Source of the DNA: Trichoplax adhaerens
Lineage: Eukaryota; Animalia; Placozoa
Reading direction: 5' to 3'
Length of the DNA: 31,406 nt
NCBI RefSeq assembly: GCF_000150275.1
Contig: NW_002060944.1
Span: 9,330,704 to 9,362,109 of the forward strand
Shown here: positions 9,176-31,406 of the stretch, in pieces
Layout of the letters: the number at the start of each line of letters is the position of its first letter
Numbering within the stretch: position 1 is the stretch's first letter
The notes under the pieces: model-generated
The model's input: the letters and a program-made list of their open reading frames with translations, nothing else
The model's database searches: none
What the model was told of the DNA's origin: nothing
Made by a program: the position numbers and the translations under genes

Positions 9176-10156
9176 CTAATTGGCTAGATTGTGCATCATC
9201 TCGGTTAAAAATTCAGTACTAACATCGGTATCAGTGCCGTCACTTGAAATTGCTAAGAAACCAAATATATCTGTATCAGTATCGTTATTAGAATTGCTTA
9301 AAGATACATATGTATGATTGCTAGAACTACTATCATCGTTGCTTGAAGTTATTGAAGACGTGGCAGACTTTGAGTAGCTTGAAGATTCATTATCTGTATT
9401 TCTGGTATAGTATTTCCTTTTTTCTCCATAAAAGATATCAGTTTCGGTATCCTGGTCACAGCAATCCGTCTGATTATCAACCTTAACAAAAACAAACTCT
9501 CTTAACCTATTCGCGGCCAGTGCATTTTCTCTACTTTTTGTTTTTCGATGGCAATAACCAGGATACCTTTCAGGCCCAAAAGATCTTTTAGCACATAAGC
9601 TATAACTATTAGATTCTGCTGCAGCAGTAATATTATAAATATACCCTTGGTAAAATGCCCATTTTTCCTCCGTTTGCGCTAGAGTAATATGAATTCTGCC
9701 TCCTTTATCCTGTACTTTAGATGATGATTCAAAGAATCGCTTGAGTATCAGAGGCAAAGTTTGTTCTCGATAACCTGATCCATCATGAGGGCAATTCCAG
9801 TGGATACGATCAAATTTTTCATTTTTTGTTTGCGAATGCTCATGGATTTTCTCTGCGTCTAGGCCCAAAATTACTGTTACTCCACGACTTTTTAATCCTT
9901 CGATGCGACGGCAAAACTTGCTACAAAATTCACGTTTATAATGCTGGCCATTTTTTTTATCACAATAACCACATGACATTTCATTGCGTTCATTTAGAGG
10001 ATTAATTTCTGAGGCAGTAATAGATTCCCCTAAATTTGGATGGTTACCTTTATGCTTCTTGAGCAATGACCAAATACCGCGAAAAGTATTTTCTCCGACA
10101 AATAGTCTCTTTTTATGATTTCCGCTACATTTGCGGTTTTTTGACTTTGCGGCCAT
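9176..10156 (-). CDS. DUF2431 / BMT5-like (rRNA uridine-N3 methyltransferase-like) domain protein, 326 aa, intronless, with a Ser/Asp-rich tail
   Basis: Motifs LFVGENTF, GVTVILGLDAEKI, FDRIHWNCPHDG, FFESSSKVQDKGGRIHITL, YNITAAA and FGPERYPGY follow the order of the DUF2431 consensus as I recall it (LLVGEGDFSF; GVDAT; FDRIIFNFPH; FF...GEIHVTL; WNI..LA; F....YPGY). It is the only long ORF in the window. Confidence 0.85.
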   Translation of the reverse strand: MAAKSKNRKCSGNHKKRLFVGENTFRGIWSLLKKHKGNHPNLGESITASEINPLNERNEMSCGYCDKKNGQHYKREFCSKFCRRIEGLKSRGVTVILGLDAEKIHEHSQTKNEKFDRIHWNCPHDGSGYREQTLPLILKRFFESSSKVQDKGGRIHITLAQTEEKWAFYQGYIYNITAAAESNSYSLCAKRSFGPERYPGYCHRKTKSRENALAANRLREFVFVKVDNQTDCCDQDTETDIFYGEKRKYYTRNTDNESSSYSKSATSSITSSNDDSSSSNHTYVSLSNSNNDTDTDIFGFLAISSDGTDTDVSTEFLTEMMHNLAN

Positions 10157-17232: not shown

Positions 17233-19706
17233 ATGGGAACGAAGCTATTGTTAGTTCTTTGAAGCACATCATTGGAGGGATGGGAAATTTTCGTGTCCCT
17301 TGGGGATGATTACTTTGTATTTCCTCAGGTAGATTGTATTCTAGAATGACATTTATAGGAATAGACTTTCGGTAAAATCTCAAATTCGAACATTTCGCAA
17401 AGTCTGAAGAGTCATTACTTTTTCAAAGAAAACTCAAAGGTGAAAAAAATATTCACAGGTACATTTAATCCTTCTGTAAGGCGGTTAAACATTGATAAAG
17501 TATTGTAATCTTTTTTGAAATAAACACTGACAGTAAAGTTTAAAAGATCAGTTATTGGGTAATTATAAAAGCTCTACTTATCTGCATAAGTGTATAAACT
17601 TTAGCGAGATTATTTTTTTATTTTTCGAAAAATAGCTCGTAAGATTTCAGTCTCTACTGAACCGATTCTTCGAGAAAAATAGCGTGCTTTGTTCTAAACA
17701 ATCTTTATAAGACACCTGCATAGATAATATAATTTAATAATCTATAAATTGCCGGGATTATGGTTAAGATTTCAATTCTCAAAATTAATAGCGTAGATTT
17801 TAACCCTGAAGGCATACTTTAACTATTCCATTAGTAGCAACAGGTTACCACTGATACTCTCATCAACTCTCTTACTCTATGCATCATAAATAGTCTTCAG
17901 TGTTGGTAAATTTGATATTCTTTATATCCATAACATATTCTTTGAAGGGCGCATTTACTTGTACGATATCTAAATCAGTCCTACATAGTATTCATTAGAA
18001 AATATGTTAGGAAAGAGACTATGTTCCTTTGATAGGTGCAATAAGAAGGAAATTAGGGTATTGTAGTAGTCAAGAGGAACATCGTTGTTTCGGAAACGCT
18101 TTCTCTACTTCTTGGTATAGATCTAAATATCACTGCAGTGAATTAGCATAAAGTTGGGCTTACTTGCTACTCTAGTTGATTTTAAATGATCTCATAATTA
18201 TAATTATTTGTATCTTTTGTGAATAAGATAAATGAATGCAATAATCTTGATTTAGTAAGATTTATTGAGATTCCACGAACTATAGCTTTATTCACTATCG
18301 CATCGAAATGCGATTGCATTTTTGTTAGCTATCAATCACAACAGTACAGCTTGATAGCACATTAAATGAGATCACGGTTATACTATCTATTACTACTACT
18401 ACTGCATATCATAACAAGGGTTGTTTCTTTTGTGAAGGATCGAGGCTTCACAATGCAGCCTTGTGACGATCTTCCTATTTGACTACTTTCTCTATAAGAT
18501 CTCCAATTTTCCTCTGAAGACCTTTCGTAGAGGAAACTTACTTATTCTGACTTCGTAATTTAGAGTCAACAAGTAGCAATGTAAGTCGAGGCACTTGACT
18601 AGCAAGGACTTTTAAGCCTAGGAGAGGCTATTGCTTACTGCTACGCCTTCAGGTGGAACTCAAGTTAACAACTTCATATTCATATCTTGAATTGATCCAG
18701 CTTCAATCCGAATTAAGAGCAAAATTCTAGAACTTCGGGCTTTAGCTAGCTATGTCAGTGCTTTAAGTTTAACGCTGATCACATTAATCGTTTTTCAACA
18801 GCCGGAATTCGGGTTTTAGCCGTAACATTTATACTCTTGTCTCAGTCACACAGGATACGGGCAAAAAGCATCCTGCATTTCACGATTCAGTATAGACTAG
18901 TGCAAACTCCCGTCGCTTTGCTGACGGTTTACGATAATGTGCTCATTTAACAGATAGTATTACCATTTGATAGACCTGTCAGATGTAATACTATATACAG
19001 TGTCAGTCAGTAATAGTACGGTTAAGACTGTTTTTGTGTGTTTGCGCTAATTCGATAATACCTAAAGTTAGTACGTTATAACTCGCTACTGTCACAAGTT
19101 ACATAATAATACTTGTGATTGAATAATTATAGTATTCTACAAATGTAACATACACTTGTTCAGTCTACGTGTTAATGGTGGATTGTACTGCGTACATTAG
19201 CGAATTCACTGTTTCACAAACTTGTAATTATAATGCGTTGTAAAAGTCAACGGCGTACGTATATAAGCCGCCACTTTTCAATACAATAAAGAGAGAGCAG
19301 AGTTAGTAGTCAGTTTTACAATAACTTCAATTACGTGTTTAATTTCTTGTCTCTACGCTAAGTGAGAGTGGTACGAACTTTCAATACAGTTGTTAGTATT
19401 AACTCTAGATAGTAATACACAACTGTTACGAAGCGTAGCTCCGTAAATTATAAAATAAGTAATAATAATTGATTAACCCGGGTTGTTTACCGTTTTGGTA
19501 GACAACCGTAGGGCATTAATACTGGTTGTTTACAATTATTATAAACGGAGCAATCAACAAAGGTTTAATTATATCTAGCTGGTTATAATATTGCTTAATA
19601 TAGGATTACCTTATGGGAGCGCACTGCTCTTGCAATTAATTACTCATATTGGTGCTGAGCTCATGCTCATCGATTGACTCATTAATTGGTTGCTATTCAT
19701 TAGTGT
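17233..19706 (+). repeat. Segment duplicated near-identically at 28913-31406 (copy 1)
   Basis: 17233-18308 aligns to 28913-29991 and 18817-19706 aligns to 30521-31405, with only scattered substitutions and small indels. The intervening ~510 bp matches the 529-N gap. Confidence 0.95.
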
Positions 19707-20884
19707 TGTTTACAAACTGAGCCCATACTAAGTGGTATTAATTGTCTGGGAGTATCTACCTAAAGTAACATATACAAATTGTGGAGGGAGCAACTTCCTA
19801 GTATGCCCCACAGATGAGTGGGGATGGTATAAAGACCGAGCGAATTATCACTCGCTAGTAGTAGTTGTTCCGGACTAGGATAATCTAGTAGAGACAAGAA
19901 ATTGGATGGCCGAATAAAAAGTACCAGTGGTTGGAGAGAAACCTTAGTAGTTGTGTAACTGTGTGGAAAGAGTTAGTTTTCACTTAGTAGAAGACTTCCA
20001 AGTCAGTGGAAGACTTACATAATTACTCTAGCACTTGATATAAACGAGTCATAAGAGGGATTTGCGACAACACTAGGCAACAATCTTCTCAATTAAGACC
20101 AAGTTCAGAGCGGGCTTCGTAACAGGCGGATTAGTATTAAAATGTATCCGCTCATCTGAATAAACCATAAAAGGCTTGTACTACTGCTAGTGCAAAAGCA
20201 AGGATAAAACTTACGAAAACCAATGCAGGGTGAATTAATGTAGTCTATACTTTACCATAAGTATAACAATGGGCTTCATACTTGTCACAGTCATCAAAAT
20301 AACTTATATGGATGTGTAATTTATGATAACATTTGGTTTTAAACTATTTAGAAGTATGAACTACTACTTTAGGAATGGTTATTGTTAGTATGTTGGTAGC
20401 ATAGTAAATATGTTTATAACTACTGAAAGAGTATATAAGAAGGACTGCGATCAATAAAAAGTGATTCAGGTTAAGGCTAAGTTGTGTGATAGTTTTATAT
20501 CGTACACTGTGTGGAGCGAGTTAGTACTTCGCAAGGATTCCAGTTACTATATCGTAGGCTAGGGAAGTAGTTCTGCGGATGAACGTAAAGTTTATTATAA
20601 GTACGGTATTGTTTTCTTGTGTCGCAAGGGTAGTTGTGGCAATACTCTATTCTGTTATGAATAGTGATAATAATCAGTAAAACCACTCACCTATTGCACT
20701 TATACTGGTTTTAGAAACGAAAAATCAGTTTTTATAACGTAAACGTATCAATTTAGTGACAATAATAAGCATAGAATAAAAGTTGCATTATTACCGAAGA
20801 ATTTGGGTAACTACGCGTGTTGCAGTACTGAGTTTAAATTAACCACAAATTTTCAACTTCGATCTTATTATTGAAGATTCAGCA

Positions 20885-21085
20885 ATGAAAACTAAGGTTG
20901 CTTTGGTTTCCATTTTATTCCTCGCTGTCGTTGTGGTAGAATGCAACGAAATAGAAGTTTCACTAGATGAGATAGATGAACCAATGATGGAATCGCATCT
21001 TGCAGATAAAGAATTGAATATCATGAACTGTAAGAATAACATCAATAAAGAAGATGCACTGGAGAAATCTATGGATGAGCTGAAT
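20885..21085 (+). CDS. Exon 1: signal peptide and acidic pro-segment (67 codons)
   Basis: The ATG is in a good context (GCAATGA). A basic n-region MKTK and hydrophobic h-region VALVSILFLAVVVV end at a V-E-C cleavage pattern, followed by a D/E-rich segment. A consensus donor AAT|GTGAGT follows. Confidence 0.85.
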
Positions 21086-24000
21086 GTGAGTATATATGCT
21101 TTTAGCATCAATTTCGTTATACCTTACCATTAGCAACTAGCCTACCGTTCAGAAATATTACGTCGTACTTCTCCTTGCAGTCGTAAGCTGCATGATAAAA
21201 ATCGTAGTTGAAGAGATCTCTATTCCTTAAATTATGGTAATTAATCGCTGCCTGGTCTTTAACTGCAAACTAATTTCTGTTTTGTGCAAGAATAAAACGT
21301 CGTTCGTGATATCTTATATGCTTACATGTTAGAAATTCGGCATCGTCGCTGATTTAGAAAGTATACTTAGTCAGATTAATGTAAGCGTATTATACTGTAG
21401 TCCAAATTACAAGTACGCGTATATGTTGCGTGGTGATGCTTTCATAGTCGGTAGCATGAATTACGCTATCGAACTTCAAGCCTTACCTAATTTGAATAAG
21501 TGAGAGGAGGCTTAAAAATATTTAACAATGGAATAGCTATATTGGAAATACTATATTTGAAGAATCATACTCTAGTGAAGGATAATAAATAGACAAGAGC
21601 TGTTTATTTGTAAGGCAAGTCCTATACAAACCAGAATAACTCGATTACAAAAGTACTAAAAATAGTTATCTTTACTGTTCCAAGCTGCGTGAGTATTAGG
21701 TGAGGTAAAGTGTAATTTAAGTCAGCAGATTACTTAAAGGCTTTTACTTTATGTTCTCTTGTTACAAAGATGAATTTGTGACACCTGATTGTGTCAGATC
21801 TAGTTGCGTTAAATATACTTTATTAAATATATTTTATAACTGTTATCGATTTCGATTCTAATTTTTAAAATTTAAACTTTCCGCTTTTATTTGGAAAATA
21901 CGCATTTGCTGTTCATATTGCGGACTGATAGTAATAGTAGTTAAGCAAATAAGATTGATGTTATGATATAAATTTTCTATCGTCATAAATTTATGAAATC
22001 AATATCAAGTTTTCATAGCAAATAATTAAGCAAATAACTCAGTACAATGTTTATCAAAAGATTAGCCTAATTATTACTAAAGTATCAGTGATGTCACTTA
22101 AATTATCTACTATTCTATGTACAGTATGTACCTACGTATTTATATATCTAGATTTTATAAAATATATGTAGGCACACGAATTACTAAGTAATTTTCTTAA
22201 ATTCACGTATCTATGCAATCCATATCGACTTCTTTGGAAAATATAAATCGAATTAAATAGCCCGTAAGTTAATACGTATTTGGATCATATTTACATCAAA
22301 TTTGTTCAATATTGTACTTAATTGAAAGTAATTCATAATTTACCTGCTAATGTCGATCTATATACGTAATATATTGAAAATAATGGCAATTGTGTTTAAG
22401 CAAATCAAAACTATTTATGGCGTAGCTAATTTATAAGTTCAAATTTTTTGATAAAATATACAGTTGACTAAATATAAAATGATTCTTTACTTGCTCTATA
22501 ATGCTTTCACGTTTTTGCATCTAAATGGCTATAAAATGTGGCCTCTTCGCTAATACGAATCAATACTACATAGCGCGTAAGTTATTCACTAGTGGATTTT
22601 ATTAATAAAATAGGTATAGTTATAGTTTAATTATTTTAATTAAAAATGATAAATCCAACAGTGTATTTAAATCACTCTTATTTTGATCTTTGGTATGTAC
22701 TTATACGTTTATATATTACTAAGTAATTTTCTTCAATTAACATGTTTATGCAATGGATACCGAATCCTTCGGCAAATCCTAATCGAATTAAATAGCCTGT
22801 AAGTTTACATTTGCATTTGGATTAGAGTTGTATAGTATTTGACTGAATTTATTATCATCAATAACTTACTTTTAAACGTTCGTACTTCTACAGAACTAAT
22901 CAAAAAATAATAATAACTGATTTAAAAAGATGAATTACTTATATATTTAATTTTAAACAGTTAATAGCTTATTCAAAGATAGTAAGTAGTTTCATGTACC
23001 TGTATTTAGCTACTGCATTCTAATTTATGCATTTACAACCATCGGTATCTAGTTGTGCATTTACGTATGTGTTACTAATTAAAGAAATATTTTTCCAAAT
23101 TCACATATTCATGCCATTGATAACGATTGCTGTGGCAATTCTAAATCAAACCAAATAGCAAGTAAGTTTATATTTATGTTTTGACAAGATTAAAATTTGT
23201 ACGGTGTTCAACTAATTTGAAATACTTTAAACATACTTGTTTGTCCGTACTTCTTCATGATTTATTGAAAATAATCATTTTTGAAATTGTGATTCACTTA
23301 CATAATTTATTTTTAAATAGTTAACGTTTATTTAAAAATTATAAACAATTTTTATATTCTCGTATTTTAAACACTTAATTTTAAAACTACTGTATTTATG
23401 ACCATCGATGAGCACTTGTGCATTCATGTATAACAAAGCGACTTTCTTAAATTTATATATCCATGTGATCAACACGGACTTCTTTGGAAAATCTAAATCG
23501 AACTATGTAGATCGTGAGTTCATATTTGTTCACATTTCATTTATGCAGTATTTGAATTAATTTATAAAATAATGAGAGCATATTTTTAAAATATCTAAAT
23601 ATCGTGTTCAAAATAATAAAAGCATTTATATATGTGAATCATTTATATAATTAATTTTTAAAACAGTTTACAGCTTTTGAATTGATAAATAAATAATTAT
23701 ATTCCCGTACTTTAACGACTGTATTTAAATTACGTATCATTATGATCATCGATGAGTACTTGTGCATTAATAGGTTACTAAGTACAGTAATGCTTTCTTA
23801 AATTTACATATTCATGTATGCGATATCGAATCCTTTAATAAATCTCAATCGAACCAAATAGAAAGTAAGTGCATATTTATATTTTGTTTGGATTAACTTT
23901 ACACAGTAATTGCAATCTAATCTGTAAATATCCGTATTTTTATTTAATCACATTTACAAATATCAAATTACTTACGTAATCAATTTTGAATTAGTTTACG

Positions 24001-27000
24001 ATTATAGAAGATAATAAACAATTTTACCCACTTTTAATAACTATTTAAAATTACTTGCATTTATGATCATCGGAATGTACTCGTAAAATTATGATTTACT
24101 AATTAATTTTAATGATTAATTTTCTTGAATTCTTATATCTTTGCAATCAATATTTACTCATTTGGTGAATCTAAATCGGATTACATAGTTCGTAAGTTCA
24201 TATTTGTATTTTGTTTTGATCAAAATTTGTACAGTATTTGACGGAAGCGAAATAATTAATGAATATCTTATAAATATTCGTACTAATATACGTCTTGCTG
24301 AAGATAATATTAACTAGGTTTGCAAATGTGGATCACTTATATAATTAGTTTTTCAAAGTAGTATATGGCTTTCGAATATATAAAAAATTTCAATATACTT
24401 TAACTACTGCTTTTAAATCATGTCCGTTTATCATTATGATCAGTATTTACTCGTGTATTTATAGTTTGTCAGTTGTCATGGACTAGTCTCCTGATCAGGG
24501 TGAAGTAAAGTATTCTGCTCTTTTAAGATGCTGCTATCAACTACCACTCTAATTTCTGCCTAGGACTACCATACTATACTGCTGTCACAGAGACAAACTA
24601 CACAAACTCAAGCTATTACTCTATTTCAACAACTGATTACAGCTATTTCTACTCGTAAAGCTACGTAAACTGCTAACAACAAACATGTATTTATAATTAT
24701 AAAAGAATCTCAAAAGTTTAGTCAACCTGACCTATAAAGGCGAAATTCACCACCACATTTGTGCAATGCTTTATCTATACTACTAATCACGATTTATTTA
24801 CACCGTGATAGAATTACTCAGAAATTTTCTTAAATTTTTATGTCTATGTAATCGATATCGACTCATTTGGTAAATCTAAATCGAACTAAATAGCATGTAG
24901 GTCTAGAAATGTTTGCATTTTGAAGATAATCAAAAATTTTATATACTTTAACTACATTATCTGTATCACATATATTTATCCTCATTGTCAGTGTATACCC
25001 ATGCAGCTATGCTTTACTAAGTAATATTTTTATTTTTTCATATGAATTCAATTGATATCGAATCATTTGGCGAATTGGAATCGAAATAAAATAGACCGTA
25101 AGTTTACATTTACGTTTTATGTTGATTAAATTTTTGCATTGTTTAGTTGAAATAATAAAACAAGTTTGCAAATACCAATATAATTAAGTTTCTAAGTAGT
25201 TTACAGCTTTTTGAATATAGTAAAGAGTTTTAGCTAATATAGTTCAACGGTTGTATTCCAATTGCATACATTAATCATCATAATCACTAGGTATTTTTGT
25301 TTTCATCTAATAATAAGAAATTTTCTTAAATTCTTCTATATATATATTCAATCGGTATCGACATATTTTGCAAATTTAAATTGGAAAAATAGCGTGTAAG
25401 TTTATATTTGTGTTTAATTTGATTGACTTAGTACAATACTTGATGGAAATAGTTGATAACTTATTTGTGAATGATCATATTTTCTATATACCTTACTAAA
25501 AGTAATAAAATTGTGTTTTTAAATGTTAATCACTTATGTAGTTAATTTTCAAGGCACTTTACGACTATTAAGATATAATGAATATTTGAATATGCAGTAA
25601 TTACTGATTTGAATGACAAGTATTTATGATCATTATCAATGTGCATTTATGTATTTATGCATTTTTAAGTAATTTTCTTAAATTCTATTATCTATACAAT
25701 CGATATCGAATCATTTGGAAAATTAAATCGGATTAAATAGTTCGTAAGTTTGTAGTTGTATTTCATTTTGATTGAATTAAAGGTTTATTTAACTGAAATA
25801 AAAATAATTAATAACTTGTATGCCAATTTTTGCACTCCTACATACCTTACTAAAGATTTTAACTATGTTTGGAAATATCAATCACTTACATAGTTAACTT
25901 TCAAAGTAGCTTGCTATATGACAAACAATTTTAGTATATTTTAACTTTTGTAAATTTCATGTATTTTATCATCATTATCACTGTGTACTTGTGTTTTCAT
26001 ACATTACTAAGCAAATTTTTTTTTAAATCTGATATCTATGCAATCGACATCAACTCATTCGGAAAATTTACTGTGAACTATGTATAGTTCGTAAGTTTAC
26101 GTTGTTTTTCATTAAATTTGCTCAGTATTTGACTTAATTGAAAATATTTAAAGTATTGCTTGTAAATGTCCTTATTTCTACATAACTGACTAAGAATAAT
26201 AACAAATACAGTTGCAAATATCATTTAGCTACACAGAATAATTAATTTTAAAGACGTTCATAGCGTTTTAGAAGAGAACTATATTTTAGATATACTTTAA
26301 CTACAGTAATCAAATTATATGTATTTATCATTATTATCAGTATAGACTTGTATATTTCTATAGTACTAAGTAATTTTCTTAAATTTTTATATTTATGCAA
26401 TCGATATCGACTCGTTTGGAAAATTTAAATTGGACTAAATAGTTCGTAAGTTCATAGTTTTGTTTTGTTTTGTTTTGTTTTAATTAAATTTATAAAAAGT
26501 CTGAATGAACTTATAATAGTTAATAACTTGCTTGAAAATGTTCGTATTCCTACTTGCCTTACTAGAATTAATAATAACTTCGTTTTATAATTAACTTTTA
26601 AAGAACTTTACGGCTTCTAGATCACTATAAACATTTTAATATACTTTAGATTTCGTATTTAAATTATATATATTTAAAATCATCATCAGTGTTTACTTGG
26701 GGATTTATGTATTGCTAAGTGATTTTCTTAAATTCTTATATCTACCTTATCAATACTAATTTATTTGGCAAATTTAAATCGGACTAAAACAGAATGTAAG
26801 TTTATATTTGTGTTTCAATTCTGATTAACTTTGTACAGTATTTGACTAAAATGAAATAATTAATTACTCACTTGTAAATATTCGCATTTCTACATACCTT
26901 ACTTAAAATAATAAAAACTACTTCTAAAAATGCCTATCACTACTATAATTAATTCTTAAAGTAGTTTGTGGCTTTTGAATGTAATAAACAGTTTGAGTAA

Positions 27001-28124
27001 ACTATTGTATTTAAATTATCATCATTATCAGTGCTTACTTTTACATTTATGTATTATTAAGTAATTTTCTTTAATTCTTTTATCTATGCAATCAATATCG
27101 ACTCATTCTTTTAATCTAATCCGAATCAAATAGGCTGTAAGTTTATATCTGTGTATTATTTTGATTAATTTTGGAAATTATTTAACTAAAAAGAAAATAA
27201 TTATTAATTTACTTATAAATATTCGTATTTCTACATTCCTTCTTGTTGTGAGATCCCAAATTAGCTCAGGATAAAAATTATTAGATTTTATATAGAAATC
27301 ATAGAATTTGTTGTAATAATTCAATAAAATGTAGACAGAAGATAGATATTCTTTGTTATAGGTAGAATAATCTGGGCTATGTGATACAGTAAAATTTCAC
27401 TAGGAATACTACAGCATTTATAGTTCTAATATTATTTTAGACAGTCCTACTGAATCTTATTGATTCCAATAACTAATACTTTTATCTTTGTGAATTCTTT
27501 CATCTATAATTAGAAAAATGAACTTTAGCTGAGATAGCATTACATAATTATTATTATTACCCAATATAAGAAATTACAATTTGAACGTAATAAACATCTT
27601 TGCATAATTTTTTCTATGTTAATCTCTGAATCGGCCTTCACCATTCGTTTCGAAATTGGCCAACTTTTTAGGGAGTAAGTTTGCAATGCGGTCGAATTTA
27701 AAATGTTTTAAATGCATAACTATAATTAAAAAAATGAACTTTAGCTATGATAGCATTACATAATTATTATTATTACCCAATACAGGAAATTACTATTTGA
27801 ACATAATAAACGTCTTGCATTATTTTTTTATATGTTAATCTCTGAATTGGCCTTCACCATTCGATTCGAAATTGGCCAACTTATAGGGAGTAAGTTTGCA
27901 ATACGATCGAATTTAAAATGTTTTAAATGCATAACAATAAGTATATACAATTAAAAGAGGAATTAGATTCTAGCGCTTCTAAGATAGATAAAAATAACTT
28001 TATATCTATGAAGTTCTTACTAAATCTTACTTCTAATACCAACATTTATATTTTTGTTAATTTTTTTTCTGTACACCTTCGCATCAACCCTTAGAAAAGG
28101 AAGAAGAAATCAATGCAAATCTAG
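20885..28124 (+). CDS. Predicted micro-exon gene encoding a secreted prepro-peptide: exon 1 (signal peptide + acidic pro-region), 17 three-nucleotide exons, 30-nt last coding exon
   Basis: Exon 1 (20885-21085) ends in phase 0 at GTGAGT. Seventeen AG|NNN|GT cassettes follow between 22261 and 27889, then exon 28095-28124. Phase-0 product: MKTKVALVSILFLAVVVVEC-NEIEVSLDEIDE...KSMDELN-(SQIN/IN?)-PRPQIKFHTRFFFNAGG-KRKKKSMQI*. No transcript evidence is available to me. Confidence 0.7.
22080..27240 (+). repeat. Diverged tandem array of ~350-bp intron/micro-exon units (15 cassettes)
   Basis: Recurring core: TTACTAAGTAATTTTCTTAAATTC..ATATCTATGCAATCGATATCGACTCATTTGGAAAATCTAAATCGAACTAAATAG-NNN-GTAAGTTTATATTTG. 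Triplets are at 22261 CCC, 22574 CGC (divergent flank), 22796 CCT, 23159 CAA, 23511 ATC, 23862 AAA, 24189 TTC, 24894 CAT, 25095 ACC, 25393 CGT, 25741 TTC, 26088 TTC, 26443 TTC, 26793 AAT and 27134 GCT. Confidence 0.92.
24474..24811. mobile_element. Solo LTR-like insertion within one array intron
   Basis: About 338 bp of non-array sequence with imperfect inverted ends TGTCATGG...CCGTGATA. It explains the 705-bp spacing between the TTC (24189) and CAT (24894) cassettes. Confidence 0.55.
27504..27935 (+). repeat. Recent ~215-bp tandem duplication, each unit carrying a GGA micro-exon (27672-27674, 27887-27889)
   Basis: Two highly similar units with ...ATTGGCCAACTT(T/A)TAG|GGA|GTAAGTTTGCAAT. The unit sequence is unrelated to the main array. 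Confidence 0.9.
28095..28124 (+). CDS. 30-nt exon downstream of the micro-exon array (KRKKKSMQI* in phase 0)
   Basis: A poly-T tract and CCCTTAG acceptor lie upstream and a TAG|GTAAGA donor downstream. A further acceptor (TTTTTACTTTGTAG) lies at 28462. Confidence 0.65.
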   Translation, partial: KRKKKSMQI

Positions 28125-28862
28125 GTAAGAATTTGATTTATATTGGCATATTCTGTAATCCAGCTAATCTGGTACCATTTAAAGGTAACCGACAAAGCTA
28201 TGAATAGCCTATTAAAGCATTGTATCATACGAACTGTAAGAGTATGTAAAATACTATATAATATTGCACAACTCATTCAAAGAAATCTAGTACGGATTCA
28301 TTACTCTGCGGAGGCGAAGGATGTTCGTATTTCGTAGTAAATGTTCTAGTGTAACATTGTCACAGCTACTATGCTAAGATAGCAATCAGTTACAATAATC
28401 AGTCATGAAGTATTCTATTAAAGCTAATCTCAAATAATTATCATTGCTTTTTTACTTTGTAGAAAAACAGCAAACCAATGGCTTTCAGTTGAAAAGTAAA
28501 ATTGCAAAAATGATCGATATTTGCTGATTCGAGAATTCTTGTTGCCATGTAGTGCATATTAGGTTGTATTGACAGTTACATTTGATATACCGTGGTCGGA
28601 TTTCTAATAATAGAAAATATTACCGTAATGCTAATATTAGACGATGGCTAATTATTATATTGGAAATTGTTGATGACTATTACTAGTTACTTAAGTATGG
28701 TACAACATTTATATGACGCGATGTACTGCAATTGTAAAGACGCACAACACCTTTACGGTATTGGACAATTGTAGAAAAGTAATGATATTTCAAACAGATT
28801 GGTTCGTACGGTTAAATAGATTGGTTATCTATTTAAGGAAATGTGTTCTATTAGATGACTAA

Positions 28863-28912
28863 NNNNNNNNNNNNNNNNNNNNNNNNNNNNNNNNNNNNNN
28901 NNNNNNNNNNNN
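28863..28912. other. Assembly gap (50 N)
   Basis: Run of N. Confidence 0.99.
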
Positions 28913-31406
28913 ATGGGACGAAGTTATTGTTAGTTCTTTGAAGCCATCATTGGAGGGATGGGAAATTTTCGTGTCCCTTGGGGATGATTACTTTGTATTT
29001 CCTCAGGTACATTGTATTCTAGAATGACATTTATAGGAATAGACTTTCGGTAAAATCTCAAATTCGAACGTTTCGCAAAGTCTGAAGAGTCATTACTTTT
29101 TCAAAGAAAACTCAAAGGTGAAAAAAATATTCACAGGTACATTTAATCCTTCCTACGTAAGGCGGTTAAACATTGATAAAGTATTGTAATCTTTTTTGAA
29201 ATAAACACTGATAGTAAAGTTTAAAAGATCAGTTATTGGGTAATTATAAAAGCTCTACTTATCTGCATAAGTGCATAAACTTTAGCGAGATTATTTCTTT
29301 ATTTTCGAAAAAATAGCTCGTAAGATTTCAGTCTCTACTGAACCGATTCTTCGAGAAAAATAGCGTGCTTTGTCCTAAAAAATCTTTATAAGACACCTGC
29401 ATAGATAATATAATTTAATAATCTATAAATTGCCGGGATTATGGTTAAGATTTCAATTCTCAAAATTAATAGCGTAGATTTTAACCCTGAAGGCATACTT
29501 TAACTATTCCATTAGTAGCAACAGGTTACCACTGATACTCTCATCAACTCTCTTACTCTATGCATCATAAATAGTCTTCAGTGTTGGTAAATTTGATATT
29601 CTTTATATCCATAACATATTCTTTGAAGGGCGCATTTACTTGTACGATATCTAAATCAGTCCTACATAGTATTCATTAGAAAATATGTTAGGAAAGAAAC
29701 TGTGTTTCTTTGATAGGTGCAATAAGAAAGGGAAATTAGGGTATTGTAGTAGTCAAGAGGAACATCGTTGTTTCGGAAACGCTTTCTCTACTTCTTGGTA
29801 TAGAACTAAATATCACTGCAGTGAATTAGCGTAAAGTTGGGCTTACTTGCTACTCTAGTTGATTTTAAATGATCTCATAATTATAATTATTTGTATCTTT
29901 TGCGAATAAGATAAATGAATGCAATAATCTTGATTTAGTAAGATTTATTGAGATTCCACGAACTATAGCTTTACTCTCTATCGCATCGAAANNNNNNNNN
30001 NNNNNNNNNNNNNNNNNNNNNNNNNNNNNNNNNNNNNNNNNNNNNNNNNNNNNNNNNNNNNNNNNNNNNNNNNNNNNNNNNNNNNNNNNNNNNNNNNNNN
30101 NNNNNNNNNNNNNNNNNNNNNNNNNNNNNNNNNNNNNNNNNNNNNNNNNNNNNNNNNNNNNNNNNNNNNNNNNNNNNNNNNNNNNNNNNNNNNNNNNNNN
30201 NNNNNNNNNNNNNNNNNNNNNNNNNNNNNNNNNNNNNNNNNNNNNNNNNNNNNNNNNNNNNNNNNNNNNNNNNNNNNNNNNNNNNNNNNNNNNNNNNNNN
30301 NNNNNNNNNNNNNNNNNNNNNNNNNNNNNNNNNNNNNNNNNNNNNNNNNNNNNNNNNNNNNNNNNNNNNNNNNNNNNNNNNNNNNNNNNNNNNNNNNNNN
30401 NNNNNNNNNNNNNNNNNNNNNNNNNNNNNNNNNNNNNNNNNNNNNNNNNNNNNNNNNNNNNNNNNNNNNNNNNNNNNNNNNNNNNNNNNNNNNNNNNNNN
30501 NNNNNNNNNNNNNNNNNNNNTAGCCGTAACATTTATACTCTTGTCTCAGTCACACAGGATACGGGCAAAAAGCATCCTGCATTTCACGATTCAGTATAGA
30601 CTAGTGCAAACTCCCGTCGCTTTGCTGACGGTTTACGATAATGTGCTCATTTAACAGATAGTATTACCATTTGATAGACCTGTCAGATACTATATACAGT
30701 GTCAGTCAGTAATAGTACGGTTAAGACTGTTTTTGTGTGTTTGCGCTAATTCGATAATACCTAAAGTTAGTACGTTATAACTCGCTACTGTCACAAGTTA
30801 CATAATAATACTTGTGATTGAATAATTATAGTATTCTACAAATGTAACATACACTTGTTCATTCTACGTGTTAATGGTGGATTGTACTGCGTACACTAGC
30901 GAATTCACTGTTACACAAACTTGTAATTATTATGCGTCGTAAAAGTCAACGGTGTACGTATATAAGCCGCCACTTTTCAATACAATAAAGAGAGAGCAGA
31001 GTTAGTAGTCAGTTTTACAATAACTTCAATTACGTGTTTAATTTCTTGTCTCTATGCTAAGTGAGAGTAGCACGAACTTTCAATACAGTTGTTAGTATTA
31101 ACTCTAGATAGTAATACACAACTGTTACGAAGCATAGCTCCGTAAATTATAAAATAAGTAATAATAATTGATTAACCCGGGTTGTTTACCGTTTTGGTAG
31201 ACAACCATAGGGCATTAATACTGGTTGTTTACAATTATTATAAATGGAGCAATCGACAAAGGTTTAATTATATCTAGCTGGTTATAATATTGCTTAATAT
31301 AGGATTACCGTATGGGAGCGCACTGCTCTTGCAATTAATTACTCATATTGGTGCTGAGCCCATGCTCATCGATTGACTCATTAATTGGTTACTATTCATT
31401 AGTGTA
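28913..31406 (+). repeat. Copy 2 of the 17233-19706 segment (contains N gap 29992-30520)
   Basis: Direct, near-identical match to 17233-18308 and 18817-19706. Confidence 0.95.

Follow-up and report, generated by a model that had tools for sequence, protein, structure and literature searches.

How short can an exon be, and can a peptide be written in DNA one codon at a time? This question is raised by a stretch of 31,406 nucleotides from the placozoan Trichoplax adhaerens (assembly GCF_000150275.1, contig NW_002060944.1, positions 9,330,704 to 9,362,109 of the forward strand), referred to here as the window. An initial annotation, made from the letters of the window alone, described an array of 17 three-nucleotide micro-exons between 22261 and 27889, each enclosed by a canonical acceptor and a near-perfect donor, and proposed that they are selected, spliced exons. 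The analysis supports this proposal. In RNA, the triplets are joined in genomic order. The locus, designated gene 1, is best explained as an expressed placozoan gene in which a first exon is followed by one-residue exons that are spliced and translated into a secreted peptide tail, and the probability given to this explanation is about 0.88.

The window is AT-rich (31% GC), and the pattern AG-NNN-GT[AG][AG]GT occurs 18 times on its plus strand, always between 22259 and 27895, and never on its minus strand. When spacings of 0 to 15 nt before GTRAGT donors were scanned, a spacing of 3 nt gave 17 matches, all within 22200-27900, compared with 0-2 for each other spacing. The motif scan recovered exactly the 17 triplets, coordinates and donor counts reported initially (GTAAGT in 15 exons, GTGAGT and GTAGGT in one each) and returned an 18th motif at 22977 (AAG-ATA-GTAAGT) that had not been listed. 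The array is built from diverged tandem units of ~350 bp, with motif-to-motif spacings of 201-705; 14 are main units, the CGC unit is divergent, and the two GGA units belong to a separate 216-bp repeat. In an alignment of 24 units from this array and that of a sister gene (arrays 1 and 2), neither the AG nor the GT varies and no indel falls between them, which confirms the claim that the geometry persists despite unit drift. The triplet columns carry 0.32, 0.01 and 0.31 bits versus a mean of 1.2, and are among the six least conserved of the 116 columns.

Transcription was followed in Logan assembled contigs from four runs of four studies (X1, X5, X7 and X9), which were aligned to 20830-26829 and hold no strand information. 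The parts of gene 1 are given below with the evidence for each, where an AG-free run is the uninterrupted stretch lacking AG upstream of an acceptor.

17360 to 17458, plus strand: upstream 5' exon, start approximate; donor cacag/gtacat at 17458/17459; spliced to 20877.
20877 to 21085, plus strand: exon 1; coding sequence from 20885, 67 codons (201 nt), ending in phase 0.
22261 to 22263, plus strand: 3-nt exon CCC (Pro); RNA, after 21085 in X5 and X7; AG-free run 72 nt.
22574 to 22576, plus strand: 3-nt exon CGC (Arg) with divergent flanks; RNA, joints and loose ends leave at 22576; AG-free run 110 nt.
22796 to 22798, plus strand: 3-nt exon CCT (Pro); RNA, between 22576 and 23159 in X9, and within CCTCAA from 22576 to 23511 in X5.
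22977 to 22987, plus strand: decoy AG-ATA-GTAAGT motif, not an exon; CCT is followed directly by CAA in RNA contigs.
23159 to 23161, plus strand: 3-nt exon CAA (Gln); RNA.
23511 to 23513, plus strand: 3-nt exon ATC (Ile), donor GTGAGT; RNA, X5 joint and an X7 loose end ...GAGCTGAATCCCCGCCCTCAA before 23511.
23862 to 23864, plus strand: 3-nt exon AAA (Lys); RNA, X9 joint from 23864 to 24189, GT..AG.
24189 to 24191, plus strand: 3-nt exon TTC (Phe); RNA, X9 joint and an X5 loose end CCCCGCCCTCAAATCAAA before 24189.
24894 to 24896, plus strand: 3-nt exon CAT (His), weak donor GTAGGT; RNA, X5 joint from 24896 to 25095, GT..AG.
25095 to 25097, plus strand: 3-nt exon ACC (Thr); RNA.
25393 to 25395, plus strand: 3-nt exon CGT (Arg); RNA, closes the 30 letters that continue from 21085.
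25741 to 25743, plus strand: 3-nt exon TTC (Phe); an X5 contig starts exactly at 25741; motif; AG-free run 71 nt.
26088 to 26090, plus strand: 3-nt exon TTC (Phe); RNA, an X5 genomic match ends at 26090 and continues TTCAATGC.
26443 to 26445, plus strand: 3-nt exon TTC (Phe); RNA, starts the loose end behind 26090.
26793 to 26795, plus strand: 3-nt exon AAT (Asn), acceptor CAG; RNA, loose end behind 26090.
27134 to 27136, plus strand: 3-nt exon GCT (Ala), GCC and thus synonymous in Trichoplax sp. H2; RNA, GC closes the loose end behind 26090.
27672 to 27674, plus strand: candidate 3-nt exon GGA (Gly) in the first 216-bp repeat copy; motif; AG-free run 101 nt; conserved in H2.
27887 to 27889, plus strand: candidate 3-nt exon GGA (Gly) in the second 216-bp repeat copy; motif; absent from H2.
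28095 to 28124, plus strand: candidate 30-nt exon, KRKKKSMQI, its last codon an in-frame TAG; donor GTAAGA; AG-free run 81 nt; conserved in H2.
28463 to 28520, plus strand: candidate last (3' untranslated) exon, end provisional; by-eye likeness to the terminal exon of sister gene 2, both reading ...AAAAGTAAAA...

Contigs of X5 and X7, two separate studies, leave the genome at 21085 and continue with CCCCGCCCTCAAATCAAATTCCATACCCGT, which is identical to the first ten triplets in genomic order (CCC CGC CCT CAA ATC AAA TTC CAT ACC CGT). Exon 1 contig depth is 1210 in X5 and 219 in X7. The initial annotation had considered that transcripts from exon 1 might lack the triplets, and these contigs carry ten of them directly behind its end. 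An alternative exon at 21181-21300 (TCG TAA, AATAAA) was rejected, as no joint from 21085 to 21181 is listed in the four runs and the abundant contigs proceed to CCC. Further downstream, an X5 contig covers 25741-26090 and then reads TTC, AAT and GC[T]. Altogether, 14 of the 17 triplets are seen in spliced contigs, namely the first ten, the TTC at 26088 as an anchor, and the TTC, AAT and GC of GCT that follow it.

Partly spliced contigs from three studies contain GT..AG joints that tie the triplets to their own introns. In X5, 22467-22576 is joined through CCTCAA to 23511-23823; in X9, 22576 is joined through CCT to 23159; and another contig retains intron 1 up to 22263 and then reads CGCCCTCAAATCAAATTC. 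Intermediates with the upstream intron retained and the downstream one removed are present together with the reverse type, which indicates that the introns are removed independently, in no fixed order. The introns of array 1 are ordinary GT..AG introns of 198-702 nt. X1 shows even, DNA-like coverage of the introns and none of the spliced joints. Exon skipping was not seen, as all listed contigs include the triplets in order, with the limit that contigs drop rare variants. The 18th motif, at 22977, lies in the intron between CCT and CAA, and the AG preceding it is only ~12 nt upstream. With its short AG-free run, it is skipped in RNA and is an internal negative control.

A search of the same genome with the repeat unit and an exon 1 profile identified sister genes, at least three of which carry candidate one-codon exons in runs of 10, 16 and 4; gene 3 was also reached by a pattern search. 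The RNA evidence covers gene 1 only.

C1394:621049: gene 2, with ten triplets (IQRKTRHRTS) in units homologous to array 1.
C1385:30260: gene 3, with a 33-nt exon (AMKKKSKKAWW) followed by 16 triplets (WSRRRRHTGRRQTIWA) and introns of 120-394 nt.
C1400:797893, minus strand: gene 4, with four Arg triplets and AG-free runs of 80-186 nt.
C1411:4733370-4733573 (L031 71-274): gene 5, whose signal peptide leads into a strongly acidic pro-region (net charge -18).

In all five genes, exon 1 has 60-68 codons and a phase-0 end, and its product starts with a signal peptide that leads into an acidic pro-region. An LFLA core is conserved in the three exon 1 peptides that were aligned, and the N-terminus is laid out alike in genes 4 and 5. 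The pro-regions have net charges of -10 to -18, and the segments encoded by microexons of +3 to +6 each; for the four genes with triplets, the ranges are 60-67 codons and -10 to -16. No run of 3-nt exons was seen within 10 kb of gene 5, where the sole candidate exon measures 24 nt and follows a 67-nt AG-free run. The flanks of gene 3 are mostly unrelated to array 1, and its triplets are identical in H2. The geometry had been said to occur in at least two unrelated flank types within the window (the main array and GGA duplication, plus the divergent CGC unit), and it recurs in the flanks of gene 3. Homology searches with exon 1, gene-2 exon 1 and the family profile returned only two Trichoplax sp. 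H2 proteins, both mis-modelled. One, 'hypothetical protein TrispH2_010977, partial', is 99% identical to exon 1 and ends exactly where exon 1 ends; the other, TrispH2_006281 at gene 3, reads through into intron 1. Existing gene models miss this architecture, as the initial annotation had expected of gene finders. The exon 1 product has no Pfam match, and the whole window has no Rfam match at the gathering threshold.

The acceptors share a pronounced signature. In arrays 1 and 2, stretches of 69-178 nt that lack any AG precede the acceptor AG of 26 out of 27 units; in array 3 the runs measure 67-115 nt; and across units the run reaches at least 67 nt in all but one. Within the 70-nt zones before the 17 acceptors of gene 1, AG is found at none of 1162 positions, compared with 47 expected from the rest of the array, and GA is found 52 times. 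Among background gaps from one AG to the next, only 1.85% measure 67 nt or more. A conserved TACTAAG/C at -72 to -79, followed by TAATTTTCTTAAA, often marks the start of the AG-free run in arrays 1 and 2. The motif TACTAAG/C resembles the yeast-like branch-point consensus. RNAalifold on 24 units predicted no conserved structure (0 pairs), and the conserved upstream block is therefore read as a set of linear signals.

Several other repeats in the genome contain AG-NNN-GTAAGT and were not counted as exons. A 64-nt minisatellite at C1394:730011-730364 (minus strand) has several AGs per unit, and a 313-bp satellite at C1412:3206820-3207790 has AG-free runs of only 3-22 nt. Repeats at C645:737-1579 and C1411:3705757-3706271 also carry the motif, as pattern matches only. 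Such satellites are useful negative examples for genome-wide scans. A solitary array-like unit at C1402:353821-353936 (L032 ~1822-1937), with AG-ATG-GTAAAT and a 74-nt AG-free run, has no exon 1 nearby according to the family profile and may be the relic of a decayed array.

The triplets themselves look coding. Across the 47 triplets of the four genes, GC content is 57% compared with 25% in the introns, and Arg accounts for 15 of 47 (32%) versus 1.65 expected (p about 4e-11). The earlier remark that no triplet is a stop holds for all 47. Comparison with Trichoplax sp. H2, from which the window (H1) diverges by about 2.5%, agrees. No splice-site change occurs in 128 positions, for which the array rate of 3.45% predicts about 4.4, and the single change in 48 triplet positions (GCT>GCC) is synonymous. 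The 90 nt upstream of acceptors differ by 2.1%, compared with 3.45% in the rest of the array. Taken together, the ordered RNA joints, the skipped decoy, the exclusion of AG and the conservation between H1 and H2 support the initial view that these are selected, spliced exons.

H1 and H2 differ by one unit. A segment of ~210 nt equal to window 27886-28094, including the second GGA exon, is missing from H2 (L001:~20640), where the intron that precedes the second GGA in H1 leads directly into the 30-nt KRKKKSMQI exon. The predicted tail is therefore ...FFFNAG-KRKKK in H2 and ...FFFNAGG-KRKKK in H1. The predicted Gly difference is a gain or loss of a whole one-codon unit.

Three other explanations can be weighed against this body of evidence. 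The least probable, and very improbable, is that the array is a plain diverged tandem repeat along which a splice-like motif was copied and never used. The units are clearly homologous ~350-bp repeats, and the satellites at C1394:730 kb and C1412:3.207 Mb carry the same motif. The triplets are nevertheless joined in RNA contigs, which refutes this explanation for at least 13 of the 17. Moreover, the AG and GT are invariant in 24 units and the 70-nt zones stay free of AG despite unit divergence, the geometry recurs in the mostly unrelated flanks of gene 3, and the AG-free runs of the other satellites are far shorter. Scarcely more credible is the idea that the joined sequence is an assembly artefact or a processed DNA copy located elsewhere. 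All the evidence does come from de Bruijn contigs, and three runs are only guessed to be RNA. However, two studies yield an identical 30-letter chain, and X9, which is RNA by record, has joints that agree with it. Contigs also link the spliced chains to the retained introns of the locus itself, which is impossible for a retrocopy, and the DNA-like run X1 has no such joint.

The remaining alternative, unlikely but the most serious of the three, accepts splicing and denies translation. Under this alternative, the triplets would form a non-coding tail, represent splicing noise or serve as a device that breaks a 7-kb intron into steps. The many intron-retaining contigs and the likeness of the architecture to recursive splice sites (AG/GTAAGT) suit such a role, and translation of the triplets is itself a prediction. 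The properties of the triplets point the other way. The frame, in phase 0 at the end of exon 1, is open across all of them; their GC and Arg content stand out from a 25%-GC background, with 0 stops in 47; and their sole change between H1 and H2 is synonymous. In addition, an acidic pro-region is paired with a basic triplet-encoded tail in four genes, and the most abundant contigs keep the triplets.

The preferred explanation, a translated chain of one-codon exons, has several points that weigh against it. X9 is RNA by record and the other three runs are guessed to be, and all four provide contigs rather than raw reads. Contig coverage stops at 26829, which places the path from GCT through both GGA exons to 28095 outside it, and the CGT to TTC to TTC junctions are not displayed. 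A low-information loose end in X9 reads CGCCTCTCAAACAC after 22263 and not the triplet chain CGCCCTCAAATC; a chimeric contig, or a variant carried by organism B, could account for it. The baseline for AG exclusion is the rest of the array and background gaps. Finally, sister gene 4 has CTCTAAC ~22 nt from the AG, as read from the sequence output. A distant branch point is therefore not general, and the AG-free run is the robust general feature.

These features suggest how exons of this size could be spliced. Each intron would be recognised singly (intron definition) through purely intronic signals, and the near-perfect GTAAGT donor would make up for the missing donor consensus on the exon side. 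The acceptor would be whichever AG comes first after a distant or well-separated putative branch site, and the long spacing could keep the 3'-side machinery clear of U1 bound 3 nt downstream. In such a scheme, the 3-nt exon would be a passive spacer, leaving its triplet free to encode any residue. A comparable spacing has been described in vertebrate neural microexons, in which an extended, accessible region between branch point and 3' splice site lies upstream of the exon and is suggested to give physical space (PMC12871342, a 2026 preprint).

The predicted product has three parts. Exon 1 encodes a signal peptide (MKTKVALVSILFLAVVVV...; by inspection MKTK + VALVSILFLAVVVV + EC) and then an acidic pro-region with a net charge of -10. 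The tail probably encoded by the triplets is PRPQIKFHTRFFFNA, followed by G(G), and the gene most likely ends in the 30-nt exon, predicted to read KRKKKSMQI and stop. Judged from its sequence, gene 1 probably yields a cationic peptide for secretion. The peptide may be host-defence-like, which the signal peptide, the acidic pro-piece and the many aromatic and Arg residues of the cationic tail fit, or it may be a signalling peptide that is processed and perhaps amidated, as the Gly-Lys-Arg predicted in gene 1 would also allow. The arrays may have grown by tandem duplication of a ~350 bp 'intron + codon' module followed by codon change. More tentatively, at somewhat less than even odds, the genes may form a placozoan family whose secreted peptides are built, and change over evolution, residue by residue through module duplication and codon point changes, with a dedicated splice architecture; in-frame skipping of any subset of exons could then also give combinatorial variants.

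Other features of the window lie outside the array or interrupt it. The upstream 5' exon is supported by a loose end of X7 before 20875 that matches window 17427-17456. Its letters equal those coding for an N-terminal extension in the Trichoplax sp. H2 model P0001, and in the T. adhaerens genome it is probably untranslated. The 5' exon and the region before it (17240-17560) have a second copy at 28913-29250, ~11.6 kb further downstream and immediately behind an assembly gap at 28863-28912. The 5' exon of this copy (29105) may open a tandem sister gene or may result from misassembly, and the genome beyond the window is mostly N. Within the array, a non-repeat insertion at 24460-24780 stretches one intron to 702 nt; contig depth there is raised in X1 and X5, and contigs pass into unrelated sequence at 24713 and 24745 (loose ends), as for a dispersed repeat. 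An intronless open reading frame of 326 aa at 9176-10156 on the minus strand has a BMT5-like rRNA (uridine-N3) methyltransferase domain (Pfam PF10354, E = 4e-23) and is annotated in H2 as well.

An exon can carry one codon, and can do so 10-17 times consecutively, which bears on the minimal exon, on exon and intron definition and on steric limits to splice sites. Dozens of diverged units that obey one rule, with a built-in negative control at 22977, constitute a natural splicing system. The one-Gly-exon difference between H1 and H2 illustrates how a predicted peptide would grow or shrink by one residue through unit duplication or loss. In addition, peptide genes of an early-branching animal have been hidden from gene finders and aligners. 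Because both H2 models are truncated or wrong, catalogues of placozoan secreted and signalling peptides are incomplete.

Known systems share individual features with gene 1. The schistosome micro-exon genes (MEGs), to which the array was likened at the outset, have exons of 6-81 bp, mostly 15 bp (10.1101/2023.06.21.545858). Like gene 1, they combine a signal-peptide first exon with many tiny symmetric exons, much longer introns and a secreted product, and they are hard to annotate. In gene 1, the symmetric parts are the 201-nt coding part of exon 1, the 17 exons of 3 nt and the next exon of 30 nt, and in both systems the architecture would allow in-frame skipping. The analogy holds for architecture and fails for homology and exon size: there is no sequence homology, the phylum is another (Placozoa), and runs of 10-17 exons measure exactly 3 nt each here, whereas MEG exons have at least 6 bp. 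Isolated three-base exons are also known in animals and plants, for example in MAP4K5 (PMC8632122), where, as in gene 1, the ordinary spliceosome includes one codon. In contrast to the uninterrupted tandem runs that would build the mature peptide in gene 1, isolated microexons are single cassettes in large proteins and are regulated by SRRM3/4. SRRM3/4-type microexons depend on the eMIC domain and have a UGC enhancer close to the 3' splice site, and the only conserved TGC noticed in the 24-unit consensus is ~50 nt from the AG. Vertebrate neural microexons have an extended accessible 3' splice-site region (PMC12871342), and gene 1 a long AG-free run with no predicted conserved structure.

Recursive splice sites (AG/GTAAGT) likewise place a 3' splice site beside a consensus GTAAGT and remove a long interval piecewise. 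They keep nothing in the mRNA, whereas gene 1 retains three nucleotides per site and its intermediates follow no 5'-to-3' order. At the level of the product, precursors of cationic host-defence peptides with an anionic pro-piece share with gene 1 the predicted order of signal peptide, acidic pro-region and basic C-terminal peptide. In amidated neuropeptide precursors of the cnidarian and placozoan type, a signal peptide is followed by peptide copies flanked by Gly and a basic cleavage site. The G-K-R predicted in gene 1 from GGA and the 28095 exon would be an amidation and cleavage signal; it is the one candidate processing site, and gene 1 has no repeated peptide copies. Searches with exon 1 and the family profile revealed no homology to known peptide families. 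The initial annotation knew of no run made purely of single-codon exons, and none was found in the literature on Trichoplax, microexons or 3-nt exon runs; short words of the predicted peptide matched no paper either. Single 3-nt exons and the MEG architecture are known, and no paper was found that describes runs of one-codon exons or gene 1 itself.

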